DNA from: Eukaryota sp. TZLM1-RC
Taxonomy: Eukaryota; Protista; Metamonada: BaSk clade
Assembly: GCA_040285825.1 (NCBI GenBank)
Contig: JAUPSS010000006.1
Location: 992,001 to 1,056,000 of the forward strand
Length of the DNA stretch: 64,000 nucleotides
Direction: 5' to 3'
Below are positions 259-24,114 of the stretch, piece by piece. Within the stretch, counting starts at the first letter, position 1, and each line of letters opens with the position of its first letter. The position numbers and the translations under genes are program-made. Under the pieces are notes generated by a model. The model ran no database searches and had not been told where the DNA came from. It worked only from the letters and a program-made list of their open reading frames with translations.

Positions 259-2104
259 ATGGAGTCGACACTACCCCCACTATCCAACTTCTCTTCTGTT
301 CCCTTTGTTGCTCGAGCACTTTCATCATTTCCTCTCAGTGTACCAGACCGTCTCACAAGACTCTCGCTTTCACGAAACTCTCTCAAGACATTCTCCTTCC
401 AGTCACGCTCTCTGCAAGTTTTAGATGTCTCTCTCAACCAATTGGAGTCAATTTCTCTAAATTGTCCCAAACTCACAATCCTTGATGTATCTTACAATTA
501 TTTTTCAGATGCCGAGTCCATATCATTTACTCGATCCAAGCTTTCTGTATTTCGTTGTTCTGGCGTTTTTATTGATAAACTTCCTTCATGTCTCTCTAAT
601 TCCAAAAAGTTGCAGTTTTTGGATCTTTCTGAATCTGCCATCACTTCCATTAGACCTCTGCTTCACTTTCGTAGACTTTCTACCCTTCTTCTTCGTTTGT
701 GCTCCTGCCTTGAAGTCGATCTCTCAGATCTTGCCAATTTTACTAACCTCAAATTTGTTGATTTAACCTATGCCAACATCACATCTTTTTCTCCTTCTGG
801 TTCGCAAAATAACGTGTCTCATTTAAACCTATACAAAGCTTTCGGCTTTCCACTAGATCATAATCTATTGAATAAGTTCTTGCCAAGAACCAAGATTGTT
901 TACCCAAATGGAAGATCTAATTTTAACCCCTCGTTCCTACCCCTACAAACCAACTTCAACAATGCTCCATCATTTCTCCTCCCCGCAGCCCCTCTCCTGC
1001 CCCCTCCTCTTGCGTTATCCACACTTCGTTCCAAGCTCACTGATGCCGGCTTCTCTTGTCCCCTGACTCTTCATGAAGATCGTTTTCTTGGGGTGTTCCT
1101 GGGGGCTGCTATCGGTGACAGTAATGGGTTGGCTACTGAGTTCCACATTCCCAGCTTGGCTGCTTGGTACACTCCATATCCTTCACTGCTGACATTTCTT
1201 CTCAACAATGATCATCAAAGAGCTTCTTATATCCCTGGTTCGTTCCATCACTCCGTTTCTTACCACAGGTCACTGGACAGACGACACTTCACAGGCCATT
1301 CTCATAGCCCGAACACTCTCTGAGACTCGTGACATTTCCTCAATTCCTTCAACGTTTGCTGCAAAGCTTAAACACTGGTGTGAGTATGGATTTTCTGAAC
1401 TTGGAGATGTTAATGGAGTAGGTACAGGAAGAGAGGTAAAAAAGGTTGTTTCAGATTCATCATTTTTGTCTTGTCCACTTGAAACTGCTCTTAGAATCCG
1501 ATCCCTAGGCTTAACTTCTCCTCAGAATGGAGCCTTGATGAGAACTTTCCCTATTGGGTTAACTCAACCAAATGATGAGGTATGGGTGAAGGAAGCAGCT
1601 AGAATGTTTGCAATGACTACCCACCCTGATCCAAGGGCCCAAGTGTCTTGTGTTATAGTGTCGCTTCTCATTGCAAGGTTGATGAGAGGAGAGGAGGTTA
1701 AGGAGGTGGAAGAACTACATCAAGTGGTGCTTGAAGCAATAAAGTTCATTGATGAATTGAATAATGGTAAGCTAAATGTTGATCACTTGGATTCTTTCCT
1801 TTCAGTCGATTGTTTTGATGATTTAGATTTGGGTGACTCAAAAGATATGGGTTATACTTATAGAACATTAGGGGCTTCATTGCTGTCATTGAGAAAATTT
1901 CTTCAAGGTGAGGTTTTTGAAGATTTGCTTGGTAGGTTGATTGTAAGTGGTGGTGATGCTGATACTAATTGTTGTGTTACTGGAGCACTTTTAGGGGGTT
2001 ATTTAGGATTTTCTGGTCTCTCAAAGGAACTTATTGCAAGGTTACCTTATTACAGTTTTCTAATTGACGAAGCGGCCCGGCTTTGGAAGTCTATTAAAGA
2101 GTAA
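259..2104 (+). CDS. Leucine-rich-repeat + ADP-ribosylglycohydrolase (ARH/DraG family) fusion, 2 exons (259-1237, 1269-2104), ~604 aa
   Basis: N-terminal LxxLxLSxN repeats (LTRLSLSRN, LQVLDVSLN, LTILDVSYN, LQFLDLSES), a Pro-rich linker, then ARH motifs GAAIGDSNG..EF, WTDDT, NGALMR, THPDP, GGDADTN. Removing 1238-1268 joins ORFs 259-1323 and 1208-2104 in frame (SYIPG-HWTDDT). Confidence 0.85.
1238..1268 (+). other. 31-nt spliceosomal intron
   Basis: GTTCGT...TTCTTACCACAG; removal restores the frame and the G-x-WTDDT motif. Confidence 0.85.
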
Positions 2105-5585: not shown

Positions 5586-5758
5586 CTAAAAATCTATTTC
5601 CTCAAACTCTACATCTACCATTGAAAATTTACCTTCAACCTTTTCTTCATAATATCTTCCTAGTGATAACAACGAGCTAGAAACAAGGCCATGCATCCCC
5701 TTAAAAATGGAAAATACAATTCTATTTTGCCAAAAGGTTCGGTCAAATATTCTTCCAG
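5586..5758 (-). mobile_element. 3' end of a family C non-LTR element, interrupted by the gag-LTR array
   Basis: Encodes GRIFDRTFWQNRIVFSIFKG...EEIDF*, homologous to the C-termini of families A and B; directly continues the sequence that stops at 29648 (..IVKKTG). Confidence 0.8.
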
Positions 5759-5872
5759 TGTTGTTGTTGAACTCAAATTGAATTAGTAGGTTTCTTTGTA
5801 TTTCGACTGATGACGTGATACTCATTTATGAATCAGTTTTATTAATAAACAACAGATTTCTCTCTCTCCTTC

Positions 5873-6628
5873 ATGACTGTTCCTTCTGTCAACCTCCCGT
5901 CTCTTTCTTCCATGAAAGTTCAAAGTGTTCTCTTGTTCCTACAAGAGTGGAAGATCTATTCTTCTGTGACTTCTAAGAAAGAGCTTGTTCCAGCAAGACT
6001 CTTGGTCGATTCTTTTCTGTTAGAATCCCTATCTCTCCAGAAATCCGACGTCTCTTCCAGTGACGATGTTCTTCTTAGACATCTACAATCTGTCGTATCG
6101 TTCGCCACGTACGAAAATTTTAGTCTGGCTATGTCAGAACTGAAGCTTGATGTCCGTATTGGTGACGTCCGAGAACGTATGTCCTGTTACCTGCAACGTT
6201 TCCTCCAGGTAAAGAGTAGGGCTTCCGGACTGAAGTTACCAGACACAGCTTTTCTGAATCGATTTGCCAGAGGAATTCTTCCCGTAGGTCTTCAACGTTC
6301 TCTACTAGCGAGCATTCGAAATGATGTATTCCCAGATCTTCACTCTCTTGTCGAAACCACTACTGATGAGCTGTTGAACTGCTCTAGGGTTGCTTCATGG
6401 ACTCGTGGTTTCAAAACCTCAGTGAATGATGTGGAACGTACGGCTGGCACTAAAACGAGGTCCTCTTGGCGCTCTCAGGATTTAAAAAATCAATCGTGCT
6501 TCAAGTGCCACAAGCCTGGACACATCTCCCGCGATTGTCCATCTAAAATCAAACATGAGGTAAATTATTTGTGTCACACAAACGATGCACCAAAGAGTTT
6601 AACAAACCCCATACCTTCCCTCTATTGA
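5873..6628 (+). CDS. gag: Retrotransposon Gag-like protein with CCHC zinc knuckle, copy 1 (251 aa)
   Basis: CFKCHKPGHISRDC (CX2CX4HX4C) near the C-terminus; lies between LTR and PPT. Confidence 0.85.
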   Translation: MTVPSVNLPSLSSMKVQSVLLFLQEWKIYSSVTSKKELVPARLLVDSFLLESLSLQKSDVSSSDDVLLRHLQSVVSFATYENFSLAMSELKLDVRIGDVRERMSCYLQRFLQVKSRASGLKLPDTAFLNRFARGILPVGLQRSLLASIRNDVFPDLHSLVETTTDELLNCSRVASWTRGFKTSVNDVERTAGTKTRSSWRSQDLKNQSCFKCHKPGHISRDCPSKIKHEVNYLCHTNDAPKSLTNPIPSLY

Positions 6629-6783
6629 GCCAGTACTGTATTTGTCCTCAGAAAAGTGGGAAAAAGTAGTGTTGTTGTTGAACTCAAATTGAATTAGTAG
6701 GTTTCTTTGTATTTCGACTGATGACGTGATACTCATTTATGAATCAGTTTTATTAATAAACAACAGATTTCTCTCTCTCCTTC

Positions 6784-7540
6784 ATGACTGTTCCTTCTGT
6801 CAACCTCCCGTCTCTTTCTTCCATGAAAGTTCAAAGTGTTCTCTTGTTCCTACAAGAGTGGAAGATCTATTCTTCTGTGACTTCTAAGAAAGAGCTTGTT
6901 CCAGCAAGACTCTTGGTCGATTCTTTTCTGTTAGAATCCCTATCTCTCCAGAAATCCGACGTCTCTTCCAGTGACGATGTTCTTCTTAGACATCTACAAT
7001 CTGTCGTATCGTTCGCCACGTACGAAAATTTTAGTCTGGCTATGTCAGAACTGAAGCTTGATGTCCGTATTGGTGACGTCCGAGAACGTATGTCCTGTTA
7101 CCTGCAACGTTTCCTCCAGGTAAAGAGTAGGGCTTCCGGACTGAAGTTACCAGACACAGCTTTTTCTGAATCGATTTGCCAGAGGAATTCTTCCCGTAGG
7201 TCTTCAACGTTCTCTACTAGCGAGCATTCGAAATGATGTATTCCCAGATCTTCACTCTCTTGTCGAAACCACTACTGATGAGCTGTTGAACTGCTCTAGG
7301 GTTGCTTCATGGACTCGTGGTTTCAAAACCTCAGTGAATGATGTGGAACGTACGGCTGGCACTAAAACGAGGTCCTCTTGGCGCTCTCAGGATTTAAAAA
7401 ATCAATCGTGCTTCAAGTGCCACAAGCCTGGACACATCTCCCGCGATTGTCCATCTAAAATCAAACATGAGGTAAATTATTTGTGTCACACAAACGATGC
7501 ACCAAAGAGTTTAACAAATCCCATACCTTCCCTCTATTGC
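6784..7540 (+). pseudogene. gag: Gag copy 2 (homopolymer frameshift ~7160; stop TGA read as TGC)
   Basis: Near-identical to copy 1; extra T in the GCTTTT run. Confidence 0.8.
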
Positions 7541-7695
7541 GCCAGTACTGTATTTGTCCTCAGAAAAGTGGGAAAAAGTAGTGTTGTTGTTGAACTCAAA
7601 TTGAATTAGTAGGTTTCTTTGTATTTCGACTGATGACGTGATGCTCATTTATGAATCAGTTTTATTAATAAACAACAGATTTCTCTCTCTTCTTC

Positions 7696-8451
7696 ATGAC
7701 TGTTCCTTCTGTCAACCTCCCGTCTCTTTCTTCCATGAAAGTTGAAAGTGTTCTCTTGTTCCTACAAGAGTGGAAGATCTATTCTTCTGTGACTTCTAAG
7801 AAAGAGCTTGTTCCAGCAAGACTCTTGGTCGATTCTTTTCTGTTAGAGTCTCTATCTCTCCAGAAATCCGACGTCTCTTCCAGTGACGATGTTCTTCTTA
7901 GACATCTACAATCTGTCGTATCGTTCGCCACGTACGAAGATTTTAGTCTGGCTATGTCAGAACTGAAGCTTGATGTCCGTATTGGTGACGTCCGAGAACG
8001 TATGTCCTGTTACCTGCGACGTTTCCTCCAGGTAAAGAGTAGGGCTTCCGGACTGAAGTTACCAGACACAGCTTTTCTGAATCGATTTGCCAGAGGAATT
8101 CTTCCCGTAGGTCTTCAACGTTCTCTACTAGCGAGCATTCGAAATGATGTATTCCCAGATCTTCACTCTCTTGTCGAAACCACTACTGATGAGCTGTTGG
8201 ACTGCTCTAGGGTTGCTTCATGGACTCGTGGTTTCAAAACCTCAGTGAATGATGTGGAACGTACGGCTGGCACTAAAACGAGGTCCTCTTGGCGCTCTCA
8301 GGATTTAAAAAATCAATCGTGCTTCAAGTGCCACAAGCCTGGACACATCTCCCGCGATTGTCCATCTAAAATCAAACATGAGGTAAATTATTTGTGTCAT
8401 ACAAACGATGCACCAAAGAGTTTAACAAACCCCATATCTTCCCTCTATTGA
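7696..8451 (+). CDS. gag: Gag copy 3 (251 aa)
   Basis: Intact ORF with zinc knuckle. Confidence 0.85.
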   Translation: MTVPSVNLPSLSSMKVESVLLFLQEWKIYSSVTSKKELVPARLLVDSFLLESLSLQKSDVSSSDDVLLRHLQSVVSFATYEDFSLAMSELKLDVRIGDVRERMSCYLRRFLQVKSRASGLKLPDTAFLNRFARGILPVGLQRSLLASIRNDVFPDLHSLVETTTDELLDCSRVASWTRGFKTSVNDVERTAGTKTRSSWRSQDLKNQSCFKCHKPGHISRDCPSKIKHEVNYLCHTNDAPKSLTNPISSLY

Positions 8452-8606
8452 GCCAGTACTGTATTTGTCCTCAGAAAAGTGGGAAAAAGTAGTGTTGTTG
8501 TTGAACTCAAATTGAATTAGTAGGTTTCTTTGTATTTCGACTGATGACGTGATACTCATTTATGAATCAGTTTTATTAATAAACAACAGATTTCTCTCTC
8601 TCCTTC

Positions 8607-9364
8607 ATGACTGTTCCTTCTGTCAACCTCCCGTCTCTTTCTTCCATGAAAGTTGAAAGTGTTCTCTTGTTCCTACAAGAGTGGAAGATCTATTCTTCTG
8701 TGACTTCTAAGAAAGAGCTTGTTCCAGCAAGACTCTTGGTCGATTCTTTTCTGTTAGAGTCTCTATCTCTCCAGAAATCCGACGTCTCTTCCAGTGACGA
8801 TGTTCTTCTTAGACATCTACAATCTGTCGTATCGTTCGCCACGTACGAAGATTTTAGTCTGGCTATGTCAGAACTGAAGCTTGATGTCCGTATTGGTGAC
8901 GTCCGAGAACGTATGTCCTGTTACCTGCGACGTTTCCTCCAGGTAAAGAGTAGGGCTTCCGGACTGAAGTTACCAGACACAGCTTTTTCTGAATCGATTT
9001 GCCAGAGGAATTCTTCCCGTAGGTCTTCAACGTTCTCTACTAGCGAGCATTCGAAATGATGTATTCCCAGATCTTCACTCTCTTGTCGAAACCACTACTG
9101 ATGAGCTGTTGGACTGCTCTAGGGTTGCTTCATGGACTCGTGGTTTCAAAACCTCAGTGAATGATGTGGAACGTACGGCTGGCACTAAAACGAGGTCCTC
9201 TTGGCGCTCTCAGGATTTAAAAAATCAATCGTGCTTCAAGTGCCACAAGCCTGGACACATCTCCCGCGATTGTCCATCTAAAAATCAAACATGAGGTAAA
9301 TTATTTGTGTCACACAAACGATGCACCAAAGAGTTTAACAAACCCCATATCTTCCCTCTATTGA
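8607..9364 (+). pseudogene. gag: Gag copy 4 (two homopolymer frameshifts, possibly sequencing error)
   Basis: Extra T at ~8985 and extra A at ~9282; otherwise near-identical to copy 3. Confidence 0.8.
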
Positions 9365-9519
9365 GCCAGTACTGTATTTGTCCTCAGAAAAGTGGGAAAA
9401 AGTAGTGTTGTTGTTGAACTCAAATTGAATTAGTAGGTTTCTTTGTATTTCGACTGATGACGTGATACTCATTTATGAATCAGTTTTATTAATAAACAAC
9501 AGATTTCTCTCTCTCCTTC

Positions 9520-10275
9520 ATGACTGTTCCTTCTGTCAACCTCCCGTCTCTTTCTTCCATGAAAGTTGAAAGTGTTCTCTTGTTCCTACAAGAGTGGAAG
9601 ATCTATTCTTCTGTGACTTCTAAGAAAGAGCTTGTTCCAGCAAGACTCTTGGTCGATTCTTTTCTGTTAGAGTCTCTATCTCTCCAGAAATCCGACGTCT
9701 CTTCCAGTGACGATGTTCTTCTTAGACATCTACAATCTGTCGTATCGTTCGCCACGTACGAAGATTTTAGTCTGGCTATGTCAGAACTGAAGCTTGATGT
9801 CCGTATTGGTGACGTCCGAGAATGTATGTCCTGTTACCTGCGACGTTTCCTCCAGGTAAAGAGTAGGGCTTCCGGACTGAAGTTACCAGACACAGCTTTT
9901 CTGAATCGATTTGCCAGAGGAATTCTTCCCGTAGGTCTTCAACGTTCTCTACTAGCGAGCATTCGAAATGATGTATTCCCAGATCTTCACTCTCTTGTCG
10001 AAACCACTACTGATGAGCTGTTGGACTGCTCTAGGGTTGCTTCATGGACTCGTGGTTTCAAAACCTCAGTGAATGATGTGGAACGTACGGCTGGCACTAA
10101 AACGAGGTCCTCTTGGCGCTCTCAGGATTTAAAAAATCAATCGTGCTTCAAGTGCCACAAGCCTGGACACATCTCCCGCGATTGTCCATCTAAAATCAAA
10201 CATGAGGTAAATTATTTGTGTCACACAAACGATGCACCAAAGAGTTTAACAAACCCCATATCTTCCCTCTATTGA
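9520..10275 (+). CDS. gag: Gag copy 5 (251 aa)
   Basis: Intact ORF with zinc knuckle. Confidence 0.85.
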   Translation: MTVPSVNLPSLSSMKVESVLLFLQEWKIYSSVTSKKELVPARLLVDSFLLESLSLQKSDVSSSDDVLLRHLQSVVSFATYEDFSLAMSELKLDVRIGDVRECMSCYLRRFLQVKSRASGLKLPDTAFLNRFARGILPVGLQRSLLASIRNDVFPDLHSLVETTTDELLDCSRVASWTRGFKTSVNDVERTAGTKTRSSWRSQDLKNQSCFKCHKPGHISRDCPSKIKHEVNYLCHTNDAPKSLTNPISSLY

Positions 10276-10433
10276 GCCAGTACTGTATTTGTCCTCAGAA
10301 AAGTGGGAAAAAAAGTAGTGTTGTTGTTGAACTCAAATTGAATTAGTAGGTTTCTTTTGTATTTCGACTGATGACGTGATACTCATTTATGAATCAGTTT
10401 TATTAATAAACAACAGATTTCTCTCTCTCCTTC

Positions 10434-11189
10434 ATGACTGTTCCTTCTGTCAACCTCCCGTCTCTTTCTTCCATGAAAGTTGAAAGTGTTCTCTTGTTCC
10501 TACAAGAGTGGAAGATCTATTCTTCTGTGACTTCTAAGAAAGAGCTTGTTCCAGCAAGACTCTTGGTCGATTCTTTTCTCTTAGAGTCTCTATCTCTCCA
10601 GAAATCCGACGTCTCTTCCAGTGACGATGTTCTTCTTAGACATCTACAATCTGTCGTATCGTTCGCCACGTACGAAGATTTTAGTCTGGCTATGTCAGAA
10701 CTGAAGCTTGATGTCCGTATTGGTGACGTCCGAGAACGTATGTCCTGTTACCTGCGACGTTTCCTCCAGGTAAAGAGTAGGGCTTCCGGACTGAAGTTAC
10801 CAGACACAGCTTTTCTGAATCGATTTGCCAGAGGAATTCTTCCCGTAGGTCTTCAACGTTCTCTACTAGCGAGCATTCGAAATGATGTATTCCCAGATCT
10901 TCACTCTCTTGTCGAAACCACTACTGATGAGCTGTTGGACTGCTCTAGGGTTGCTTCATGGACTCGTGGTTTCAAAACCTCAGTGAATGATGTGGAACGT
11001 ACGGCTGGCACTAAAACGAGGTCCTCTTGGCGCTCTCAGGATTTAAAAAATCAATCGTGCTTCAAGTGCCACAAGCCTGGACACATCTCCCGCGATTGTC
11101 CATCTAAAATCAAACATGAGGTAAATTATTTGTGTCACACAAACGATGCACCAAAGAGTTTAACAAACCCCATATCTTCCCTCTATTGA
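10434..11189 (+). CDS. gag: Gag copy 6 (251 aa)
   Basis: Intact ORF with zinc knuckle. Confidence 0.85.
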   Translation: MTVPSVNLPSLSSMKVESVLLFLQEWKIYSSVTSKKELVPARLLVDSFLLESLSLQKSDVSSSDDVLLRHLQSVVSFATYEDFSLAMSELKLDVRIGDVRERMSCYLRRFLQVKSRASGLKLPDTAFLNRFARGILPVGLQRSLLASIRNDVFPDLHSLVETTTDELLDCSRVASWTRGFKTSVNDVERTAGTKTRSSWRSQDLKNQSCFKCHKPGHISRDCPSKIKHEVNYLCHTNDAPKSLTNPISSLY

Positions 11190-11342
11190 GCCAGTACTGT
11201 ATTTGTCCTCAGAAAAGTGGGAAAAAGTAGTGTTGTTGTTGAACTCAAATTGAATTAGTAGGTTTCTTTGTATTTCGACTGATGACGTGATACTCATTTA
11301 TGAATCAGTTTTATTAATAAACAACAGATTTCTCTCTCCTTC

Positions 11343-12099
11343 ATGACTGTTCCTTCTGTCAACCTCCCGTCTCTTTCTTCCATGAAAGTTGAAAGTGTTC
11401 TCTTGTTCCTACAAGAGTGGAAGATCTATTCTTCTGTGACTTCTAAGAAAGAGCTTGTTCCAGCAAGACTCTTGGTCGATTCTTTTCTGTTAGAGTCTCT
11501 ATCTCTCCAGAAATCCGACGTCTCTTCCAGTGACGATGTTCTTCTTAGACATCTACAATCTGTCGTATCGTTCGCCACGTACGAAGATTTTAGTCTGGCT
11601 ATGTCAGAACTGAAGCTTGATGTCCGTATTGGTGACGTCCGAGAACGTATGTCCTGTTACCTGCGACGTTTCCTCCAGGTAAAGAGTAGGGCTTCCGGAC
11701 TGAAGTTACCAGACACAGCTTTTCTGAATCGATTTGCCAGAGGAATTCTTCCCGTAGGTCTTCAACGTTCTCTACTAGCGAGAATTCGAGATGATGTATT
11801 CCCAGATCTTCACTCTCTTGTCGAAACCACTACTGATGAGCTGTTGGACTGCTTTAGGGTTGCTTCATGGACTCGTGGTTTCAAAAACCTCAGTGAATGA
11901 TGTGGAACGTACGGCTGGCACTAAAACGAGGTCCTCTTGGCGCTCTCAGGATTTAAAAAATCAATCGTGCTTCAAGTGCCACAAGCCTGGACACATCTCC
12001 CGCGATTGTCCATCTAAAATCAAACATGAGGTAAATTATTTGTGTCACACAAACGATGCACCAAAGAGTTTAACAAACCCCATATCTTCCCTCTATTGA
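11343..12099 (+). pseudogene. gag: Gag copy 7 (one homopolymer frameshift ~11885)
   Basis: Overlapping ORFs 11343-11900 and 11791-12099 reconstruct the 251-aa protein. Confidence 0.8.
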
Positions 12100-12254
12100 G
12101 CCAGTACTGTATTTGTCCTCAGAAAAGTGGGAAAAAGTAGTGTTGTTGTTGAACTCAAATTGAATTAGTAGGTTTCTTTGTATTTCGACTGATGACGTGA
12201 TACTCATTTATGAATCAGTTTTATTAATAAACAACAGATTTCTCTCTCTCCTTC

Positions 12255-13010
12255 ATGACTGTTCCTTCTGTCAACCTCCCGTCTCTTTCTTCCATGAAAG
12301 TTGAAAGTGTTCTCTTGTTCCTACAAGAGTGGAAGATCTATTCTTCTGTGACTTCTAAGAAAGAGCTTGTTCCAGCAAGACTCTTGGTCGATTCTTTTCT
12401 GTTAGAGTCTCTATCTCTCCAGAAATCCGACGTCTCTTTTAGTGACGATGTTCTTCTTAGACATCTACAATCTGTCGTATCGTTCGCCACGTACGAAGAT
12501 TTTAGTCTGGCTATGTCAGAACTGAAGCTTGATGTCCGTATTGGTGACGTCCGAGAACGTATGTCCTGTTACCTGCGACGTTTCCTCCAGGTAAAGAGTA
12601 GGGCTTCCGGACTGAAGTTACCAGACACAGCTTTTCTGAATCGATTTGCCAGAGGAATTCTTCCCGTAGGTCTTCAACGTTCTCTACTAGCGAGAATTCG
12701 AGATGATGTATTCCCAGATCTTCACTCTCTTGTCGAAACCACTACTGATGAGCTGTTGGACTGCTTTAGGGTTGCTTCATGGACTCGTGGTTTCAAAACC
12801 TCAGTGAATGATGTGGAACGTACGGCTGGCACTAAAACGAGGTCCTCTTGGCGCTCTCAGGATTTAAAAAATCAATCGTGCTTCAAGTGCCACAAGCCTG
12901 GACACATCTCCCGCGATTGTCCATCTAAAATCAAACATGAGGTAAATTATTTGTGTCACACAAACGATGCACCAAAGAGTTTAACAAACCCCATATCTTC
13001 CCTCTATTGA
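12255..13010 (+). CDS. gag: Gag copy 8 (251 aa)
   Basis: Intact ORF with zinc knuckle. Confidence 0.85.
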   Translation: MTVPSVNLPSLSSMKVESVLLFLQEWKIYSSVTSKKELVPARLLVDSFLLESLSLQKSDVSFSDDVLLRHLQSVVSFATYEDFSLAMSELKLDVRIGDVRERMSCYLRRFLQVKSRASGLKLPDTAFLNRFARGILPVGLQRSLLARIRDDVFPDLHSLVETTTDELLDCFRVASWTRGFKTSVNDVERTAGTKTRSSWRSQDLKNQSCFKCHKPGHISRDCPSKIKHEVNYLCHTNDAPKSLTNPISSLY

Positions 13011-13051
13011 GCCAGTACTGTATTTGTCCTCAGAAAAGTGGGAAAAAGTAG

Positions 13052-13193
13052 TGTTGTTGTTGAACTCAAATTGAATTAGTAGGTTTCTTTGTATTTCGAC
13101 TGATGACGTGATACTCATTTATGAATCAGTTTTATTAATAAACTACAGATTTTTCTCTCTCTCCTTCGTGTGTTCATCTGCCTAACGGCATCA
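13052..13193 (+). repeat. Complete 142-bp LTR closing the array
   Basis: TGTTG...CATCA termini, preceded by a purine tract, contains AATAAA; matches 23169-23310 and 24137-24278. Confidence 0.92.
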
Positions 13194-14161
13194 TGAGAAC
13201 AGAATTTTTTGTTGATTTATTGGATGTAGAACCAGGAATGTTGAAAAGTCACTTATTTTCTTCCAGCAAATTTGGGGGTATTGGATCGAACGATCGTCTT
13301 CGATCGTTGAAGCATCATTTAATGCTAGTGATGATGCTTTGTTTAATGATGAACATAGAATTGCAAAATATAGTTTAAATGTTGAAGATGATGAAATTGA
13401 GTTTAATGTTGGAGATGAATTTGTTCGTGGATTTATTAATTATGACAATATTTGTGTGTACACGTTTACACAAATAATTTAGATGCATTGAACATTTTGT
13501 TTGATTCTGAAATTAATAAAAATATTAGTTTTATTAATCAAAAAAATTACCACTAGAGTACATTAAGGAAACTTTTTTAAATGGAAAAGTAAGTGAAAAT
13601 GGAATTGAACTCTATCAAAAATGTATTAAAGCTTTTGAAAATGTAGATTTCGATATTTTTATTAAATTCTGAAAAATGATTTTATTTTTTGAAAATGTTA
13701 CGAGATCTTATTCTAGAAAAATTACTACTAAAAATAAAAGATAAAGAATCATTTAGTACAAAAATATAATTGATTTTTAATGAAAAATACAATTGTATCG
13801 AATTTTTAAAACGTAAATTTGAAGATGAGGAAAATATGATAAAACACGAGCCATATTTATTATCATTAATCACCCAAATTTTAGATGTGTCGAAAACAAA
13901 ACTTAAAAATAATTTATTATACTGATTCATTATCTGATTGTTCATCATCTTCATTTTCAAATTCATCTTTTTTTGTCTCCAATTAAATCTATAAAATTTG
14001 ATGTATCAAATGATTGTTCATCTTCATCATCCAATTCTTCAACTTCATCTTTTTTCACAAATTTTGATAAATCACCAGATGTAAGTGCTGATAGTGATAA
14101 TGCCATTTTGAAATAAAGATTAAAAATCATTTAATAAAAAGAACATATTTAAAAGAAAAAA

Positions 14162-14915
14162 ATGAATTTCACTGCATGTGAGGGTTATTGTTCAATCAAT
14201 ACTGCAAAATATTTATTTCGTAATTGTATTTTTGGAAATCCATCAAATGAATTACATATAAGAGGAAGAACATCAAAAGATTTTTTTAGAAAAATGTAGA
14301 CTTTCAATTTCGAAATTAATTGGAGAAGGTGTGCAGGGTTTTAGAAATCCATATTTTAAATTAACTCGAAAATATTATTCATCTGGTTTAGATAGTAGTA
14401 ACATTTCAGATAAAGAATATAAACAAATGTTTGATAAAGCAAATAATGAGGAAACACCAGAAAGTGAATTTATAACAGTGTTTGGTAACAGTGTGACATG
14501 TTTAATGAATGGATTATTGGGTACATTTAAAGAAAAATTTCCAAATATGGTTGTTGCTTTACATCCTGGCAATCATCCATCAATTGAAAAAATTCTTGCT
14601 GCAAAAAATATTGAATTTGTTTATACAGATGAAATTGATTCAGAAATATTTCACAGAATTAGAATGGTTATTGTTCCATTAATTTCATCTAGAGATGGAG
14701 AAATTGTTGATGTAAAAGAATTTTTCAAACAATTTGGAAAAAATGTTTACAAAGTAATGGATGTTGCTCAAGCACTTGGTGTTTTGGATTATAAAGATTT
14801 ATCAGTAAAGACAAATAGATCTGATTTTGCCTTATTTTCATCTGAAAAAATTGGAATGGAAGGTGTGGCTGGAATGACATTTAATAGGAATATTTTACAT
14901 CCAGATGGTATGTAG
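14162..14915 (+). pseudogene. NifS/cysteine-desulfurase-like PLP-dependent enzyme (aminotransferase class V), C-terminally truncated
   Basis: After correcting one T-run at ~14285: FGNPSNELHIRG..LEKCRLSISKLIG, NHPSI, VMDVAQALG, DFALFSSEKIG. These match the GNPSS-H-G, EH-S, DA-Q--G and S-HK motifs. Confidence 0.7.
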
Positions 14916-15168
14916 ATAGTTTTTGGAAAGTGTTTAGAAAAAATGAATTAAATCAAGTATATTGTAAATTTTTATTAAAACGAATGAAAATGTTTAACAA
15001 CAATGAATTTGATGATATGATTTTATATATAAAAACAATAAAAAGAACCAATAAAACACATATTATAAAAAAATATAGTTGAACAATTAAATTTGTAAAT
15101 ATACTAAAAAAATATACCAAAAATGAGTTTTGAAGAAAACTTTTTAAATATGATTCTCGCAGAAATTC

Positions 15169-15456
15169 TTGGAACTTTTTGCATATGAAGAAGATGTTGA
15201 TTTATCTATGATTGCTGAATCCGAAGTTATAGTTGCAAAACCAAATGATGAAATTATTAAAAATATATTAAGTGATTATGATCCAGAAGAAATATCAACT
15301 TTTAAATATATTAGAATTAAAGGAAGTCCACAAGAACAAATTGAACGAATTTATCATTATTGGAAATTCTTTGATTTTGATAGTGATGAATTTGAATTTA
15401 TAAGAATGGTTTTGGAAAACGTAATTGGTTTAAAAATTAAAAAAATGATTATTTAA
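15169..15456 (+). CDS. Hypothetical virus-like protein
   Basis: Acidic ORF within the gene-dense block; true start may be ~15123 via a homopolymer frameshift. Confidence 0.4.
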   Translation: MELFAYEEDVDLSMIAESEVIVAKPNDEIIKNILSDYDPEEISTFKYIRIKGSPQEQIERIYHYWKFFDFDSDEFEFIRMVLENVIGLKIKKMII

Positions 15457-15463
15457 TTTTAAA

Positions 15464-15902
15464 ATGAATTGGCTTTATGAAAATGTCGATTATGATTTAT
15501 AATGCAATAGTTACAAAAATGGAAATTATTGTGAAAATGTAATTGCAAAATATTTAAGTTTTGAAAGAACATCTATTAATGAATTTAAAAAGAAATATCA
15601 AAATTATCCATGTCCTGATATTGAAACTCCAAATTATTTCTTAGAAATCAAATCAATGAATTGGACTTCAAGTGGTTCTGCTTGGGAAAAAGTATTGGGT
15701 TGTCCAATAAAATATTTTTGAATTGGCAAAAATTAAACCAGTAAAAATAATTCTGTGTTGTAAGATATTGGATCTATGTAATGGATATGTAATTGGTGAT
15801 TTAAGTGTTGAGCGAAAGGAATATATAGATTTTTGTAAAACTCGCAACATTACATTTCATTCTGTAAAAGAGTTGATTGATAAACCTCATTTATTTATTT
15901 AA
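15464..15902 (+). pseudogene. PD-(D/E)XK nuclease, putative restriction endonuclease
   Basis: Manual translation: CENVIAKYL...CPDIETPNYFLEIKSMNWTSSGSAWEKVLGCPIKY. In-frame TAA at 15500 and a T-run frameshift at ~15718; immediately upstream of the Dam-like gene. Missing from the ORF track. Confidence 0.65.
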
Positions 15903-15922
15903 AAAAGAATTTTTTTAGCCAA

Positions 15923-16231
15923 ATGAAACCATTCATTAAATGGGTTGGTGGAAAAACCAAAAATTTTCTTTAATAAAACCATACATTCCATCAAACTTTG
16001 AAACCTATATTGAACCATTTATTGGTGGTGGTGGATTTTTATTAAATATCTTACATCATTTTTGATATGAATAATTTTTATCCAAAAATAATTGCAAATG
16101 ATATCAATCCATATATAATTAAAATGTATCAATTATTAATAGAATCACCTGATAATATTTCAATTGATTTTACAAATAAAAATACATCAGAGGAATATTA
16201 TAGATTACGGGACTTGTTTAATAATTCCTGA
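15923..16231 (+). pseudogene. Dam-family (D12 class) DNA adenine methyltransferase, N-terminal half
   Basis: Manual translation across frameshifts: MKPFIKWVGGK, YIEPFIGGGG, IIANDINPYII, EEYYRLRDLFN. The DPPY half is absent. Confidence 0.85.
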
Positions 16232-16832
16232 GAATAAGCTTAATTATTTAAGTCAAATTAGTATAAAAATCTTAAACGTTTAGAAATTTATTCACCAAAT
16301 AGTTTTGATAATATAAAATTTTCTGGTTTAAATAATGTTGAAATTATAATTCATTGAATGATTTTTTTATAAAATTAAATAAATCCATTGACCAATATAA
16401 AGAAAAACCAATTAATTGTTTTTTTAATTTAATGTATTTTTTTAATAAAATGGATTTTGGGACAATTCTACATCATTTATTAGCAATTGCAGTAATAATT
16501 ATAATTACTGGTGGTGCGGTTTTTTATGCTTATTCTAAAAATAAATCAGAGTTTACACCATCGAAAGTTATTGAACTTGAAAATAATTAAAATTAATGAT
16601 TGTGGTTTAAAAAACCATATTGTTTCTTTAACAAATAATTGGTCAGCACAATTGGAGATTGGAAACATCTGCTTCTGCAAAGGGGGTGATTACTGCAGTG
16701 AAGTCGACACAATGTCATAGTTTTCCACCTTGAATATGAGCCATTGACACAGAGTGTTGACTCTCGTCAAACTGATTTTCTCGCACACAAACCTGGATTT
16801 TCAAACTCTTTAGAAACTGAGCAATCGTCGCA

Positions 16833-17130
16833 TTAACCGATTGTTAGTCTTTTAATGTTACAATCTTGAATAACTTTCAATCTATTAAAATTTAATTTGT
16901 CAATCCTAAGATCAATTAGATTAGGTAATAATGAAATTATTTTAAACAAATTTTCTTCACAACCTTTTAATTCTAAAGTTTTTAATTTAGTTAAACTAGA
17001 GAAATCAGTTCTAAAATGTTCAAGTCCCATATAAGTTGAATCTAGTGCTTCTAAATTTTGTAAATTTGTAAAATCAAAAATTAAATCAGAACCATCACAA
17101 AGGAGATTTATGATTTCTAATTTTTTTAAT
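16833..17130 (-). pseudogene. Leucine-rich-repeat protein fragment
   Basis: FSSLTKLKTLELKGC, LPNLIDLRI-type repeats. Confidence 0.5.
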
Positions 17131-17198
17131 TTTTATTCTTACAAATTCCCAAAGACTCTTGGTATGGAATTTCTGAAATTCAATTATCCTATGAAGGA

Positions 17199-17610
17199 AT
17201 GCAAAGTGAACCACTTTGTTTCACTGCAGCAACTATTCGTAGATATATGAATTCAATGGATCAAGAATACCGCGAAAGTGTTTTAGACATTCTCGAGTGT
17301 GCTGAAATTGATGATCCCCTTGAAATTTTAACTGCTGAGGATATGCAAGAATTTTTGATGGAACATTCAATTGGTTATGAAGAATCTAGAAGTGCAGATC
17401 ACAATACTCATTATGATTATGTTAAAATTCCACCCTATTCAACTCAATCTCGTTCTCTTTCTTTCAGAATTCCAATTCCTACTTTTATCAAAACTTTCTT
17501 ACCAATTAATAAAGCAGCCAACATTGAAATTACTTTTGATGCCACTAAAATGTTTAAATTTTTACATGTCACTGGTCTCAGAACATCAGAGTTGGTAAAG
17601 ATTGGTGATT
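17199..17610 (+). pseudogene. Possible tyrosine recombinase/integrase N-terminal fragment
   Basis: TAATIRRY plus, ~110 aa later, FLHVTGLRTSELVKI (box I-like TGxRxSEL). No HxxR/Y box II follows. Confidence 0.45.
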
Positions 17611-18212
17611 TAACTGGAGGTGAAAATAATGAAGATGATCATTTAATTCCAGAAATTAAATCAACTAGTGAAGTAAAAAAATATTTGAAAAGAAGAATTG
17701 AGGAGGAAGAGTATCACACAGCAATGAGTGAAATTATTGGAAGTGATGAATTTAATCTTTATAACAAACCAGAACACATTAAATCTAATAATGATTTTAT
17801 TTTAAAAATGGTTGAAAGACATCCATCACAATTCATTCACGCACATAATTGCTATGATTAAGCAGGTGAAGCAATTAGAATTAATCCAGAAGTTCGAAAA
17901 TATTTGGGAAATAGAATTTTGAATTCAAAACAAAAACTATTAGAATTGATTGAAATTGACCATTCTGTATATAAGGAAATTGATATCAAACTTTTAAAAG
18001 AGGATATTCCATTTGCGAATAAAGTATTGTCAATTTTAAAAGATAAACCTTTAACAAAACGTGAAGTTGTAAAAGTTTTAACATTCAATCCAAAACAATT
18101 ACGCGATTTATTGGAAACAAGAGAAGACCATTTAGATTTGTATTTAGTTTTAAATTTAATTGAAGTTGTTGATACTAAAATTAATGTATCAGAATTTTTA
18201 GATAAGTTATAA
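17611..18212 (+). pseudogene. Helical-repeat protein resembling DUF4116, with an in-frame TAA at 17859
   Basis: PEHIKSNNDFILKMVERHP / LKEDIPFANKVL-type repeats; ORFs 17199 and 17904 share a frame. Confidence 0.35.
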
Positions 18213-18222
18213 AAATGATTTT
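18211..18222 (+). promoter_or_regulatory. AAAAATGATT motif, putative viral promoter (also at 13672, 15441, 19194, 22489)
   Basis: Five occurrences, each starting 22-25 nt upstream of an ATG (13695, 15464, 18234, 19219, 22511). Confidence 0.6.
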
Positions 18223-18233
18223 TTTTACGAAAA

Positions 18234-18866
18234 ATGTCATCTTTGGATTTCTTGAAATCAGCACTTAATTCAATTGAGCAAATTGAACCAGTCACTGAAC
18301 CAATTTCTGAAATAGAAACATCTAATTCAGAAACACAAAACGATGAAACAACAATTGATTTAAGAAAACATCTTCTTGATGCAGAAATCAAAAAAGAATT
18401 GAGAACTAAAATGAAAAATTATGTTTCATTTCAAGAAGATTCAGAAGATGAACAACCCATTGTTGTTGAAAAACCAACAGTTGTAGAAAAACCATTCAGT
18501 GAATTACAAAAAATATTTTTAGCAAATGGTGGAAAGAAAATGGTTGAATTGAAAAAACTATTAGCTTGGTATATAAACTCAAAACAAAATTTAACATTTT
18601 CTAAAAAATATCTCTACAAATCAATTCCTATTGGTGGTGGAAATATGAGATTGGAACCTGTCAAACACACTGCCTTTGGTTTATATGGAATTGGTAAACC
18701 ATTTGAAACTAATCAAACATTGCCTGATGAATATGTTTTAGTTGATGGAAAAATTACAAAAATAACCAAACACGAATATGTTGTCTATGGTGTTGTTAAA
18801 AATAATACAGCAACAATTCATAATTTTCCACAATATCGAATTCAAGCTGATGATGGATGTTATTGA
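18234..18866 (+). CDS. Hypothetical virus-like protein (210 aa)
   Basis: Intact ORF preceded by the upstream motif; no family recognised. Confidence 0.55.
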   Translation: MSSLDFLKSALNSIEQIEPVTEPISEIETSNSETQNDETTIDLRKHLLDAEIKKELRTKMKNYVSFQEDSEDEQPIVVEKPTVVEKPFSELQKIFLANGGKKMVELKKLLAWYINSKQNLTFSKKYLYKSIPIGGGNMRLEPVKHTAFGLYGIGKPFETNQTLPDEYVLVDGKITKITKHEYVVYGVVKNNTATIHNFPQYRIQADDGCY

Positions 18867-19191
18867 ACCAATTCATAAAAAACTTGAAAAATTGTGTCTA
18901 AGAATTGTTCACAATGTTCAAAGACCAATTGAAATGATTGAAAAATATGAAAATATGTATCTTGCGAATGAAATATCTATGGATGTTTTAAAGAAAAAGT
19001 ATTTTGAACTTCGTTTTAAAAATATGATGTTTGGAGAAGTTCAAGCATTGTGGAATGTAATGCAAGATTTATTTTGTAGAGAATTAAGAAACTTTGAATC
19101 TTCCAAACCCATTGACAACTTACTTGATTTATTTTACAAAGAAGTTGAAATAATTTCAAAAAGATTTAATAAAAAGAAAATAATTCTGTAA
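18778..19191 (+). CDS. Hypothetical virus-like protein (probable start ~18854)
   Basis: ORF tightly packed behind 18234-18866. Confidence 0.45.
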   Translation: MLSMVLLKIIQQQFIIFHNIEFKLMMDVIEPIHKKLEKLCLRIVHNVQRPIEMIEKYENMYLANEISMDVLKKKYFELRFKNMMFGEVQALWNVMQDLFCRELRNFESSKPIDNLLDLFYKEVEIISKRFNKKKIIL

Positions 19192-19218
19192 ATAAAAATG
19201 ATTTTTTTTTCAAAAAAT

Positions 19219-19810
19219 ATGATTACATTTCTTGATCAAAATCGATACTATTTCAGATTGGCATTTTTATTATTCATATAATAATATTGCAGCAACAGAA
19301 AATCCAACAAAGCCATCCATTGAAAAATTAAAAAATCGTAATATAAATCCAACTACTTATACAGATGATCAAAAATCATTATTATTTGGTCATCCTTTAG
19401 ATATGGAATATACGATTGGAAAAGCTGGAATTTTAAAATTAGTTGAAATTAACAGAGATGAAATTCAAAATGAATCACAAAAAATAATAGATGATGACAC
19501 ATTTAGATTTATGGTTCCAATTGATTGGTATATACCAGAAAAACATGAAATTTTAGGATTTTATGAAACAAATGAATCACACATACATGACAAATTAAAA
19601 ACATATCTTAGATTGCCAAATTATAAAAAATTCAAAGCTAATGCAATGAAAAAACTTTTACCCAAAACTCCATTTATTGAACCAGATGCATTAACAACAA
19701 TAGATGTTTTGAAAATATTATCATCATCTATAATACTCCCTGATAAATTTATTGATAGAATCTATTATGATTGGTTTATCATCCTTATGAATATAATTTA
19801 TCTTATTTAA
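19219..19810 (+). CDS. Hypothetical virus-like protein (N-terminal frameshift)
   Basis: Upstream motif at 19194, ATG at 19219, long open frame 19232-19810. Confidence 0.45.
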
Positions 19811-20248
19811 GTCTTCAATAAAGTTTTCATAATCAAAATCATCAATAGATGGATCAGAATTTTCTGAATTAAGAATATCGTCATCAGTAATACTGTTAAT
19901 AACATCAGGTTGTGGTTGTTTGTCCACTTTGATTTTACTGGCGTTTTCTATTATCTCATAATATTTACCCATATCATCATTTGGATCATCATTTGGACCA
20001 TCATTTGGACCATCATTTGGACCACCATAATGAGTTTCATCACTATCAGGATCATATAATCCAAATAGTGTTTCTGTATGACATGATGGATTAAATATTT
20101 TATCATCAATTGAATGTTCAAATAATGATGCCAAATATCCAATAAAGGCAAAATCATTATTTGATGTGAAATGTAAATTATCTAGTGCAATTCTATGATT
20201 ATAAAGATATAACATATCTCCATAAGATGATGTTGATAATTCTTTCAT
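19724..20248 (-). CDS. Hypothetical acidic protein with (G/D)PND repeats
   Basis: 174-aa ORF; 12-bp tandem repeat (CATCATTTGGAC) x4 at ~19975-20023. Confidence 0.45.
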   Translation of the reverse strand: MKELSTSSYGDMLYLYNHRIALDNLHFTSNNDFAFIGYLASLFEHSIDDKIFNPSCHTETLFGLYDPDSDETHYGGPNDGPNDGPNDDPNDDMGKYYEIIENASKIKVDKQPQPDVINSITDDDILNSENSDPSIDDFDYENFIEDLNKINYIHKDDKPIIIDSINKFIREYYR

Positions 20249-20900
20249 TTTTCCACCAATTAATTTTTCAACTGCATCATTTAGGAAATCAATTTCACCA
20301 TAATATAATCTTCTATCAATTGGAATAATTGATTCAATTGGACTATTAATGAATTCAGAACGAAGGAACCTTCCAGGGAATTTTGTAGAGTCACTAAATC
20401 CCTCAACAATTGATTTAATATAACTATAATTAATTGAATTTAAATGTTCTCAAAATTTGAAATAATTATTTTCAAAGTCATCTGATAGATGTGATATTTT
20501 TACCTTTTTATATCCTCCACTACGTCTTCTAACAATATGTTGAGGAATGAGACCAATGTGTCTCACAAGAATTGGATAACTTTGATATCTCTTGATTGAT
20601 TCATTAATAATTGTTTCAACCTCTTTCATATTTCCTCTGAGATATGCATTTTGTAATAGATTTTCCATTTTTAAGAGAAAACAATAAATTTTCAATATCG
20701 AAATAATTAATTGAAATTAATACAGATTGCATATATTTCGATAAATCCAACACCATCAACTCAATGCGTTGTCTTTCTTTATCCTGCATATTGTGAAATT
20801 CTTCCATTACACTACTAAATTTTTTCAAAAAACTGTGACGACATATTGTTGTAATAAACATTTATAAAAAACAATAATAATCTATTTAATTTAATTACAT

Positions 20901-22145
20901 TTAAGAGTTTTTTGTTTTGTTTATTGTGTAATCTTTATGAAATACTGCAGACAATTGTCTTTCTGTATCATCGGTATTTGAAGCAGTTCCAATCAAAACA
21001 CTTTCTCCTACTGATGCACTTCCTCTTGGATGAGTTCCATCAAATGTATTATTGTTAAAGTAACGAATGTAATAATTACTAGCACTAGTAGTAAAACGTA
21101 AAGCATTATCTGTTACAAATCTAATATCACTTTTTAATTCTTCCATTTTCCCAAGATAAAGCATCGCCCAAGTTTCCACTATTTTCAGTAAAGTTTGAAT
21201 TGAAAATTTGAACTTCATTTGATTGCAAAAGTCATTACATTTTTTTTCACATCATCTCCTTCCCCAGGATTGTGAATGTTAAATTTAATGTAGGAAGTGT
21301 CAAATCCCGAATTACATTTGTAGGCAATAGAATGTGAACGAGCATCAGTATCATTTCTTCCAAGAACAATTGTTCCCTCACTAAATCTATCGTGAATTGT
21401 TCTCAAGTCAATAGTTTGAGGGGCTGAAGAAAAAGATCGCAGGAAGTTGTTTACCACCATATTCAAACTCAATGGAATTTAAATAAATATTATCAAATGT
21501 TTGTGGTTCAGTAAAAGAATTTGCTTCATTTATTCTTGCCAAATCAGATGCTAAAACTCCACTAGTTAATCTTTGTTCCCCACCATTCCATATTTGAATT
21601 GTTCCATCAACTGGTTCTAATTCTCTAGTTGCAAGTGGTTGTTCATCCCCAATATCTCCAACATAAGCAATTCCATTTTTTGTCAAAACCAAGTCTACCA
21701 TCATTTTTCTCCATCATATTTAGTTGCAATTAATCCTGTGAATACTCCATCCAATAATGAATGTTCAGCGCCTTTTCGAAGATAAATATTTTCATTCTCA
21801 ACTTTTTAAATCAGTTGTTGTGACTTTGACATTTTCACCTTGAACATAAACATTTCCACCTACAACAACATCACCACTCACATTCATATTGTCTGTTGAA
21901 ACTGATTTAATAAACACACCAGAAGAATTAAAACTAATTAAATCAACTGAACCATATGTTAATGTGGTACCAGATGATACTTTTATTTTTTCTTTTATTA
22001 AAATTTCATTAACAGAAATACCATTTTCAATCCACTCAATTGGAAGTGTGTGTGGCTTCTTTTTGTATTGAACAATTTTTATTTTATCACTCGAATCAAT
22101 TCCAATTATATTTTGAAAATATGAATAATCAATTATATATACCAT
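20901..22145 (-). pseudogene. Fibre/tail-like virion protein split by frameshifts
   Basis: Four overlapping ORFs join as VSGDVVVGGNVYVQGENVKVTTTDLKVENENIYLR...GLIATKYDG..DGRLGFDKNGIAYVGDIGDEQPLATRE, a beta-rich pattern typical of viral fibre proteins. Confidence 0.5.
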
Positions 22146-22180
22146 TGTATAAAAACTATAAAAAATTTTTCAATGAAAAA

Positions 22181-22458
22181 ATGGAAAAATTTGAAACTGA
22201 AGATGTTATTGTTTATTATGGATTTATTAAACGAGAAATTAATAAAGTTTCTTTATTAACAAAAATTGTGAATTAATATGTGATGAGAATGTAATTGTTT
22301 GTAAAAATGATTATTTACCACCAACAATTAAGTACAATCATAATTGTCCAATTTGTTATGATGATTTTATCAATCCAGTTGATTTGAATTGTAATCACAC
22401 ATATTGTATGAGTTGTATTGATATGTGGGATAATGGATGTCCACAATGTAGAAAATAA
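22181..22458 (+). pseudogene. Small C3HC4 RING-finger protein (one frameshift ~22265)
   Basis: Manual translation CPICYDDFINPVDLNCNHTYCMSCIDMWDNGCPQCRK* (22345-22458). Missing from the ORF track. Confidence 0.85.
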
Positions 22459-22596
22459 AAATAATTAACATAATGTTGTGTGAAATAAAAAAATGATTTT
22501 TTTAACAAAAATGAAACAAACATTTTATATAAATAATAATGAATATATAATCTATGAACAAGAAAGTGATATTTTTATTTGAATCAACGATCGAAT

Positions 22597-24093: not shown

Positions 24094-24114
24094 GCCAGTA
24101 CTGTATTTGTCCTC

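Follow-up and report, generated by a model that had tools for sequence, protein, structure and literature searches.

An array of Gag-only LTR retrotransposon units without their candidate leader intron in the metamonad Skoliomonas litria: a probable spliced-cDNA copy multiplied by recombination between long terminal repeats

Introduction

Tandem arrays in which neighbouring retrotransposon units share a single long terminal repeat (LTR) have been described for the Cassandra elements, which are miniature retrotransposons with terminal repeats (TRIMs; PMC7215508), and for tandems derived from transposable elements in Drosophila (PMC5932611), where a dozen or more units can lie in an LTR-internal-LTR arrangement, copy number varies at the site, and growth is ascribed to local or ectopic recombination. 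Here we analyse an array of similar build in a 64,000-nucleotide window of the Eukaryota sp. TZLM1-RC assembly (contig JAUPSS010000006.1, approximately 992001-1056000), which belongs to Skoliomonas litria, the sister Skoliomonas species being represented by GEM-RC1 (PMC11316075). The array, hereafter array 1, consists of eight units of a 1.1-kb LTR element whose single open reading frame (ORF) encodes a Gag-like protein, and every unit lacks the same 52 nucleotides at the LTR-gag junction; unlike the Cassandra and Drosophila tandems, it codes for Gag, sits in a metamonad and is built from a unit without its LTR end and primer site. We favour, with a probability of roughly 0.62, a history in which one spliced-cDNA copy at a CCAG target site was amplified by recombination between LTRs and was later drawn into an inverting exchange with a neighbouring insertion.

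Several other systems share parts of this picture. Retrozymes (PMC4918200) are likewise small non-autonomous LTR elements with 4-bp target-site duplications (TSDs) and sometimes a tandem arrangement; they are non-coding, carry a hammerhead ribozyme in LTRs of approximately 350 bp and are proposed to pass through a circular RNA that keeps both the primer-binding site (PBS) and the polypurine tract (PPT), whereas the element described here has 142-bp LTRs, encodes Gag, contains no Rfam ribozyme, and the circle that has been proposed for it would lack the PBS. Plant TR-GAG elements (PMC4350172) are also short and non-autonomous with gag as their only ORF; they reach 4 kb as opposed to 1.1 kb here, and the metamonad host, a putative leader intron spanning U5 and the PBS, and a primer motif that does not resemble a tRNA complement set the present element apart. 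In the human L1 SpIREs (PMC5860796) the retrotransposon's own transcript undergoes splicing within its 5' leader, and DNA copies of the spliced RNA have become fixed, rarely and as apparent dead ends for further transposition. L1, however, is a non-LTR element that relies on target-primed reverse transcription, whereas here an LTR element would lose its primer region through splicing and see the resulting copies multiplied by recombination. BARE (PMC3735527) offers the likeness of a spliced RNA dedicated to Gag translation and kept apart from the reverse-transcribed RNA pool, but its splicing removes pol sequence; the putative intron here lies upstream of gag and would take the U5 end and primer site with it. 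Finally, pseudogenes derived from circular RNAs (PMC4897178), in which back-spliced circles have been copied into DNA, are the nearest described relative of a circular-RNA mechanism; they are mammalian, presumably L1-mediated and not described as a route to LTR arrays, and nothing at the present locus requires a circle. Against this background, the new features are an eight-fold amplified intron-less unit, arrays that form independently of the deletion, and a probable reciprocal exchange that links two arrays.

Results

All eight units of array 1 lack an intron-like leader segment

The single full copy of the element in the window, insertion X, measures 1110 bp and comprises two 142-bp LTRs bounded by TG and CA, a 26-nt leader, a 251-codon ORF and a purine tract before the 3' LTR. 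BLAST searches with X (23169-24278) and with its LTR against the window place the LTR starts of array 1 at 5759, 6670, 7582, 8493, 9406, 10319, 11231 and 12141, that is, with a spacing of 909-914 bp, and the units are 98-100% identical to one another; Tandem Repeats Finder missed the array, its longest period being 500. A second array of three units, array 2, lies on the minus strand and combines two units that keep the 52 nucleotides (A and B) with one that lacks them (C). The complete LTR is the terminal one in each array, as an earlier note on this DNA had observed for array 1 (Table 1). In addition to the gag ORF of unit 1, array 1 contains intact ORFs at 7696-8451, 9520-10275, 10434-11189 and 12255-13010. 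All frame-breaking differences between units in a 24-unit alignment are +1 changes in A or T runs of 4-6, which are probably nanopore assembly errors; because such differences suggest unpolished errors in repeats, the true number of intact gag ORFs may be higher than the assembly shows.

The same alignment reveals that an identical set of 52 columns, GTGTGTTCATCTGCCTAACGGCATCAATAATTATTGGCCCTTCTTATTTCAG, is missing from the eight units of array 1 and from unit C. The missing segment starts with GTGTGT and ends with TTTCAG, and neither edge can be moved by a single base (TTC/GTG ... CAG/ATG), so that the loss runs exactly from GT to AG without microhomology. Gone with it are the final 26 nt of the 142-bp LTR and the entire 26-nt leader, up to the gag ATG. 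The description given in the earlier note, both of the nine precise losses and of the three copies that keep the segment, is thereby borne out.

The boundaries of the segment are conserved where its sequence is not. In a second subfamily with a 64% identical Gag, the corresponding stretch reads GTATTTCTGCCTAACGGCATCA/ATAATTATTGGCCCTCATTGCAG/ATG, with a 45-nt segment (GTATTT...TTGCAG/ATG) that recurs at this position throughout the 17 units of the array at locus L002, and the element of GEM-RC1 reads GTATCAACGTTGACCTTACGGCAACA/ATAATTATTGGCCCTCACTGCAG/ATG, with a segment of 49 nt (GTATCA...CTGCAG/ATG). In each of the three lineages a GT thus precedes the LTR end by 20-26 nt and the ATG is immediately preceded by CAG, in otherwise diverged surroundings, and the segments of subfamily 2 and GEM-RC1 both begin with GTAT. 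At the 3' side the three lineages end in CTTAT-TT-CAG, CTCAT-TG-CAG and CTCAC-TG-CAG, respectively, which conform to a YTNAY-N2-YAG pattern, and the same pattern is present in a small sample of host introns taken from gene models (CTTAC-CA-CAG, TTGAC-CT-CAG and TTCAC-TC-TAG). In terms of longer context, the element's 3' end CTTATTTCAG resembles the host ends CTTACCACAG, TTGACCTCAG and TTCACTCTAG, again within this small sample. The YTNAY-N2-YAG end of the host introns recalls the fixed distance between branch point and acceptor in other metamonads. A host intron within the window provides a direct comparison: its 31 nt start with GTTCGT and end in CTTACCACAG, its removal fuses the ORFs at 259-1323 and 1208-2104 into one frame of 604 codons, and the TTCTTA-N3-CAG ending that it has in common with the 52-nt segment upholds the likeness pointed out earlier. 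Across the fetched loci most annotated host genes are intronless, and the clear introns are 29-32 nt long with GTATG or GTTCG donors (L001 1943-3117 and 8265-9550; window 1238-1268).

Given the exact GT..AG boundaries, the conservation of the splice positions in subfamily 2 and in another species, and the host-like 3' end, the 52-nt segment looks like a real spliceosomal leader intron. Its splicing, deduced from sequence comparison, would remove the U5 end and the primer-binding region from the RNA. Because the segment is intron-like, an RNA origin of the deleted unit through a spliced cDNA is the best reading; the RNA-mediated transposition of Ty1 was likewise classically demonstrated by precise intron loss. 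The proposal in the earlier note that the precise loss marks an RNA intermediate is therefore supported as regards the intron-like segment and a spliced cDNA, and not as regards the circular route that had been attached to it.

One insertion site and a probable inverting exchange connect the two arrays

The flanks of the three insertions in question point to an exchange. Insertion X is bordered by TGAG on both sides, four empty paralogous sites with a single TGAG are present in the window, and the empty-site form of X is also found as a contig in three DNA runs. Array 1 is preceded by CCAG and followed by TGAG, and the adjoining 2.66 kb match the 3' flank of X at 98% identity. On the minus strand, array 2 comes after the 5' flank of X, whose last bases are TGAG, and is followed by CCAG. 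The two copies of the CCAG TSD of a further insertion, Y, are hence split between the two arrays. The LTRs are distributed accordingly: X-type LTRs, with AAAC[T]ACAG and a long T-run, are found only at the two ends that adjoin X flanks, and all others are of the common type. Furthermore, the two arrays contain complementary gag hybrids, as units 7-8 of array 1 have the Y marker 213A and lack 441C while unit A of array 2 has 441C and lacks 213A (coding-sequence positions).

The swap of TSDs between the arrays and the complementary hybrids are most simply explained by a reciprocal exchange in which the CCAG-site array recombined, within gag, with a second copy of X in inverted orientation; this exchange would have inverted the intervening DNA (13194-29648, approximately 16 kb). 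All nine deleted junctions of the window then appear to trace to one insertion site. The empty site of Y, rebuilt by joining its flanks, yielded no more than a stop-to-stop frame of 111 codons on the opposite strand and is uninformative.

The surroundings are themselves highly repetitive. A 3.6-kb segmental duplication of 98% identity (12255-15854 versus 23337-26997) includes insertion X and its 3' flank, and the region 33000-64000 is a dense mosaic of repeat modules of approximately 0.3-4 kb in both orientations at 91-99% identity. The module that received X belongs to this mosaic and contributes at least four empty sites.

Such a setting raises the question of a partial assembly artefact, in which unit number, unit mix or the inversion itself would stem from mis-joined nanopore reads, since both unit count and inversion are taken as given by an assembly made with Flye from 41x nanopore coverage (PMC11316075). 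The many +1 homopolymer differences between units and the wealth of 95-98% repeats in the window point in that direction, and a pair of inverted arrays separated by 16 kb is prone to mis-joins or flip-flop heterogeneity. The swapped TSDs, the LTR types and the complementary hybrids are nevertheless mutually consistent, in a manner not expected of a random mis-join, and real substitutions between units fall into ordered blocks (see below); we accordingly regard an artefact as improbable.

A phylogeny of the units bears on the question of a common origin. The tree is almost unresolved at 0.1-0.8% divergence, with recombination between units blurring the signal; units of one array cluster together, here and in arrays elsewhere, and the deleted units do not form one clade in the best tree, although a single origin is not rejected (approximately unbiased test, p-AU 0.09). 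The earlier note had named, as a refutation of its model, a phylogeny that traces all deleted units to one DNA-level deletion; the junctions lead to one locus, and the tree is compatible with one origin that it does not itself recover. One locus and one origin would also be expected if a deletion at the DNA level had happened to run from GT to AG and had then been multiplied by unequal crossing-over, an explanation that gains from the fact that the case for splicing is a comparative one. It would leave to coincidence the exact GT..AG edges without microhomology, the end of the deletion directly on the ATG, and the conservation of the GT and CAG/ATG positions in two diverged lineages, and we hold it to be quite unlikely.

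Arrays most likely grow by recombination between LTRs and do not require the deletion

The earlier note had connected the deletion with the arrays themselves by proposing that the acceptor ahead of gag is joined by back-splicing to a donor in the downstream LTR, yielding a 911-nt circle whose rolling-circle reverse transcription would give a multimer that recombines into a resident copy. To place array 1 in a wider context, other loci of the family were sampled through annotated proteins, and five further arrays were retrieved (Table 1), with 2 to at least 17 units. All of their units keep the segment, as do units A and B of array 2, and array formation is therefore independent of the 52-nt deletion. 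Their period is everywhere the element minus one LTR, namely 961-963 bp in subfamily 1 and 957 bp in subfamily 2. The agreement of the predicted circle with the period of array 1, which had been advanced as support, is thus not diagnostic, because 911 bp is what the same rule gives once 52 nt are taken from the unit.

These arrays have one LTR between units, and a single TSD encloses each of those at L001, L009 and L004. At L013, one unit and three units occupy the identical GTTT site in two copies of a duplicated segment, with flanks that are 99.4% identical over 3.7 kb and 1.5 kb, so that copy number evidently changes in place. The duplication concerned (L013 9835-10937 and 15092-18120) is a tandem segmental duplication of approximately 5.3 kb in which the element lies among RVT_1-bearing genes.

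Array 1 itself provides evidence for growth in steps. Private single-nucleotide polymorphisms (SNPs) define blocks of adjacent units, 1-2, 3-6 and 7-8 (2+4+2): six private substitutions are restricted to units 1-2, one is common to units 3-8, one to all eight and another to units 7-8. Since neighbours share private variants in blocks, whereas a lone rolling-circle product would start uniform, array 1 must have grown stepwise by duplication of neighbouring units. Exchange of a truncated 5' LTR with a complete 3' LTR would yield a truncated internal junction, and only the last LTR would therefore remain complete, as is the case here. Ordinary DNA recombination between LTRs, and not a circular RNA, is most likely to have produced the array.

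The circle model is not without attractions: the junction is precisely the join of donor and acceptor, the period equals the predicted circle length, read-through transcripts of tandems would carry a downstream donor, and in mammals back-spliced circles are known to have been copied into DNA (PMC4897178). Neither period nor array needs a circle, however, when arrays form with the intron kept. The proposed circle would also be devoid of the conserved primer motif ATAATTATTGGCCC, whereas retrozyme circles keep PBS and PPT (PMC4918200), and its product would be born uniform, so that the SNP blocks demand later duplication at the DNA level in any event. In addition, an AATAAA lies 25 nt upstream of the donor, such that a normally terminated transcript may have no 3' donor, with the proviso that metamonad signals may differ, and no ribozyme or other known Rfam family was found. 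Together with the single locus of the deleted junctions, these points speak against the back-splicing and rolling-circle route, which on the present evidence is unnecessary and very unlikely.

A linear RNA multimer would be a different matter. A tandem read-through transcript could keep its first intron and primer site, have an internal intron spliced out, be reverse-transcribed as a multimer, and integrate or recombine. The deleted junctions of the window do all lie inside tandems, the one in array 2 is internal, and dimers within a single TSD exist at L001 and L009. On the other hand, the first junction of array 1, beside the CCAG flank, is deleted as well and would need an extra LTR-LTR deletion; the one-versus-three difference at L013 and the SNP blocks reflect in-place change at the DNA level; and no dimer with identical SNPs at two sites was seen. 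We thus consider copying of the arrays through RNA unlikely, and return to LTR recombination as their source.

Outside the window, none of the 26 sampled subfamily 1 junctions is deleted. A genome-wide count of deleted and intact junctions, proposed previously, is answered here for the sample only: within the window the deleted junctions do lie inside arrays, and arrays elsewhere are intact. Seven dispersed copies with identical Gag all keep the segment and each has its own 4-bp TSD, so that the intron-containing form is the one that transposes. No other locus of the assembly encodes the Gag variant of array 1.

Several of the sampled copies show peculiarities of their own. At L020 (5029-11654), the primer motif reads ATGATTATTGGCCC in the first unit and is mutated to a common form, ATAATTATTGACCC, in units 2-7; a terminal LTR seems to be missing from the end of this array, which adjoins a reverse-transcriptase gene. 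The copies at L017/L018 (JAUPSS010000001.1, 3941686-3970983) represent an older variant, 93% identical and with an internal 260-bp deletion in gag, that repeats every 8.8 kb within a larger tandem segmental repeat. Of two further loci, L015 holds an old copy truncated at its 5' end, and the subfamily 2 copy at L016 is degenerate.

Proposed history of the locus

Structures, TSDs, empty sites, SNP blocks, intron-containing arrays elsewhere and splice-site conservation can be read directly from the sequences; splicing, the cDNA step and the order of events are what we infer from them. In the first of three proposed steps, a spliced transcript would have been copied into DNA on a single occasion, as a new insertion or by conversion of a resident copy at the CCAG site, to give a truncated 5' LTR fused to gag together with a complete 3' LTR. 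Unequal homologous recombination between LTRs would then have multiplied this copy in place, as for the intact-unit arrays genome-wide. Finally, reciprocal exchange with an inverted intact copy (TGAG) would have inverted the DNA in between and left array 1 with eight deleted units and array 2 with two intact and one deleted unit. A spliced-cDNA event followed by unequal crossing-over had been entertained as a fallback in the earlier note, and it is this version that fits the evidence.

How a spliced RNA could be fixed in DNA is suggested by the standard scheme of LTR reverse transcription. Minus-strand strong-stop DNA made on a co-packaged unspliced RNA would transfer to the 3' R region of the spliced RNA and be extended over the junction. 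Plus-strand strong-stop DNA would subsequently pair through R and the retained part of U5, and the outcome would be a DNA with a truncated 5' LTR-gag fusion, a complete 3' LTR and, at either extremity, the intact end that integration requires. In the other route, a partial cDNA would convert a resident copy. Both routes are expected to be rare, which agrees with the junction census. A splice donor ahead of the primer site has viral parallels, as the major splice donor of foamy viruses and deltaretroviruses lies in R, upstream of the PBS.

Several observations weigh against this history. The spliced RNA would be without its primer-binding region and would need either strand transfer from an unspliced RNA packaged alongside it or a partial cDNA that recombines with a resident copy. 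The segments of 45-52 nt are longer than the 22-32 nt of six short annotated host introns that were sampled, and two longer gaps in host gene models, 95 and 118 nt, look unreliable. Logan DNA contigs from four runs list no 52-nt skip or deleted junction, which is not proof of absence as a junction-specific unitig is only approximately 60 nt long. Unit B of array 2 keeps the intron and yet has Y-type gag markers, so that the Y array would already have been mixed before the exchange, or further exchanges would have followed. Finally, the 4-bp CCAG match taken by itself has a 1/256 chance of coincidence.

A Gag-like protein encoded by a non-autonomous element

The element presents direct repeats bounded by TG and CA, short TSDs (4 bp at every one of the 11 insertions examined), empty sites, and the tract AGAAAAGTGGGAAAAAG as PPT before the 3' LTR. 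It is too small for pol and has a single ORF, and we describe it as a 1.1-kb non-autonomous LTR retrotransposon encoding only a Gag-like protein. The 251-aa product contains a CCHC zinc knuckle (residues 208-224), and the ORF is conserved across subfamilies and species, all Gag homologues coming from Eukaryota sp. TZLM1-RC and GEM-RC1. Profile searches against PDB and Pfam matched retroviral nucleocapsid knuckles only. The N-terminal 175 residues are predicted to be helical, and an AlphaFold model with a pLDDT (predicted local distance difference test) of 36 is unreliable, so that no capsid fold can be assigned; the Gag label is accordingly well supported by position and knuckle, and not by fold.

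Directly after the LTR of every intact copy lies a candidate primer-binding motif of 14 nt, ATAATTATTGGCCC (23311-23324), which is identical in two subfamilies and in GEM-RC1 (window, L002 and L012). It opens with the palindrome ATAATTAT, has no obvious complement among tRNA 3' ends, and is followed by sequence that varies by lineage past TGGCCC. With regard to an autonomous partner, among the fetched loci ATAATTATTGGCCC occurred in none outside Gag-only elements. The LTRs of three lineages further share TGATGACGTG, which includes a TGACGT box, and an AATAAA approximately 30-35 nt downstream, the rest of their sequence being different (23210-23260; LTRs of the L002 units; L012 3880-3935); these are likely promoter and poly(A) elements, and the splice donor follows approximately 25 nt downstream of AATAAA. 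Rfam searches of the whole window at gathering thresholds, and of 23100-24350 at E<=1, were both negative, hence no ribozyme was found; the LTRs have no detected hammerhead and the element carries a protein-coding ORF, in both respects departing from a retrozyme.

Table 1. Features of the window and tandem arrays at other loci of the family (TSD, target-site duplication; PPT, polypurine tract)
Feature	Position	Strand	Remarks
Host intron used for comparison	1238-1268	+	31 nt; GTTCGT...CTTACCACAG
CCAG, 5' TSD copy of insertion Y	5755-5758	+	partner at 29645-29648
Array 1	5759-13193	+	eight units (116-nt truncated LTR + gag + PPT, approximately 911 bp each) and one complete terminal LTR; all LTR-gag junctions without the 52 nt
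gag ORF of array 1, unit 1	5873-6628	+	251 aa
Complete terminal LTR of array 1	13052-13193	+	X-type (AAAC[T]ACAG, long T-run); 99.3% identical to the single-copy LTR
3' flank of insertion X	13194-15854	+	starts with TGAG; 98% identical to 24279-26997
Segment presumably inverted by reciprocal exchange	13194-29648		Y array with inverted X copy
Single full element X	23169-24278	+	LTRs 23169-23310 and 24137-24278; TSD TGAG; gag ATG at 23337
52-nt candidate leader intron	23285-23336	+	U5 end (23285-23310) and leader with ATAATTATTGGCCC; ends in CAG before the ATG
CCAG, 3' TSD copy of insertion Y	29645-29648	-	read on the minus strand
Array 2	29649-32645	-	three units; A and B with the 52 nt (32528-32477 and 31561-31510), C deleted (junction 30591/30590); 5' flank of X, 3' flank of Y
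Empty paralogous site of X	34013-34100	+	single TGAG; others near 50080, 61441 and 58439 (minus strand)
Array at L001			2 units; TSD CTTG; all keep the 52-nt-type segment
Array at L009			2 units; TSD ATGG; all keep the segment
Array at L004/L013			3 units; TSD GTTT; all keep the segment
Array at L020			7 units; all keep the segment
Array at L002 (subfamily 2)			17 units or more; all keep the segment

Discussion

A circular route operating with a borrowed reverse transcriptase on a PBS-less circle would, if true, have been a spliceosome-dependent counterpart of retrozymes, but the locus provides no evidence for such a new route. It offers instead an unusually clear case of array growth and inversion through LTR elements, in which swapped TSDs and complementary hybrid genes would still record the exchange between two insertions.

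The larger interest lies in the putative intron, for which RNA-seq exists for S. litria (PMC11316075). If RNA data confirm it, a leader intron would excise the element's own U5 end and primer site, so that the spliced RNA could be translated into Gag only and the unspliced RNA alone would be copied. This would be a compact answer to the conflict between translation and replication, set in a deep-branching and little-studied eukaryote. Array 1 would then illustrate that the translated form is occasionally fixed in DNA where, unable to transpose, it may nonetheless reach eight copies through recombination.

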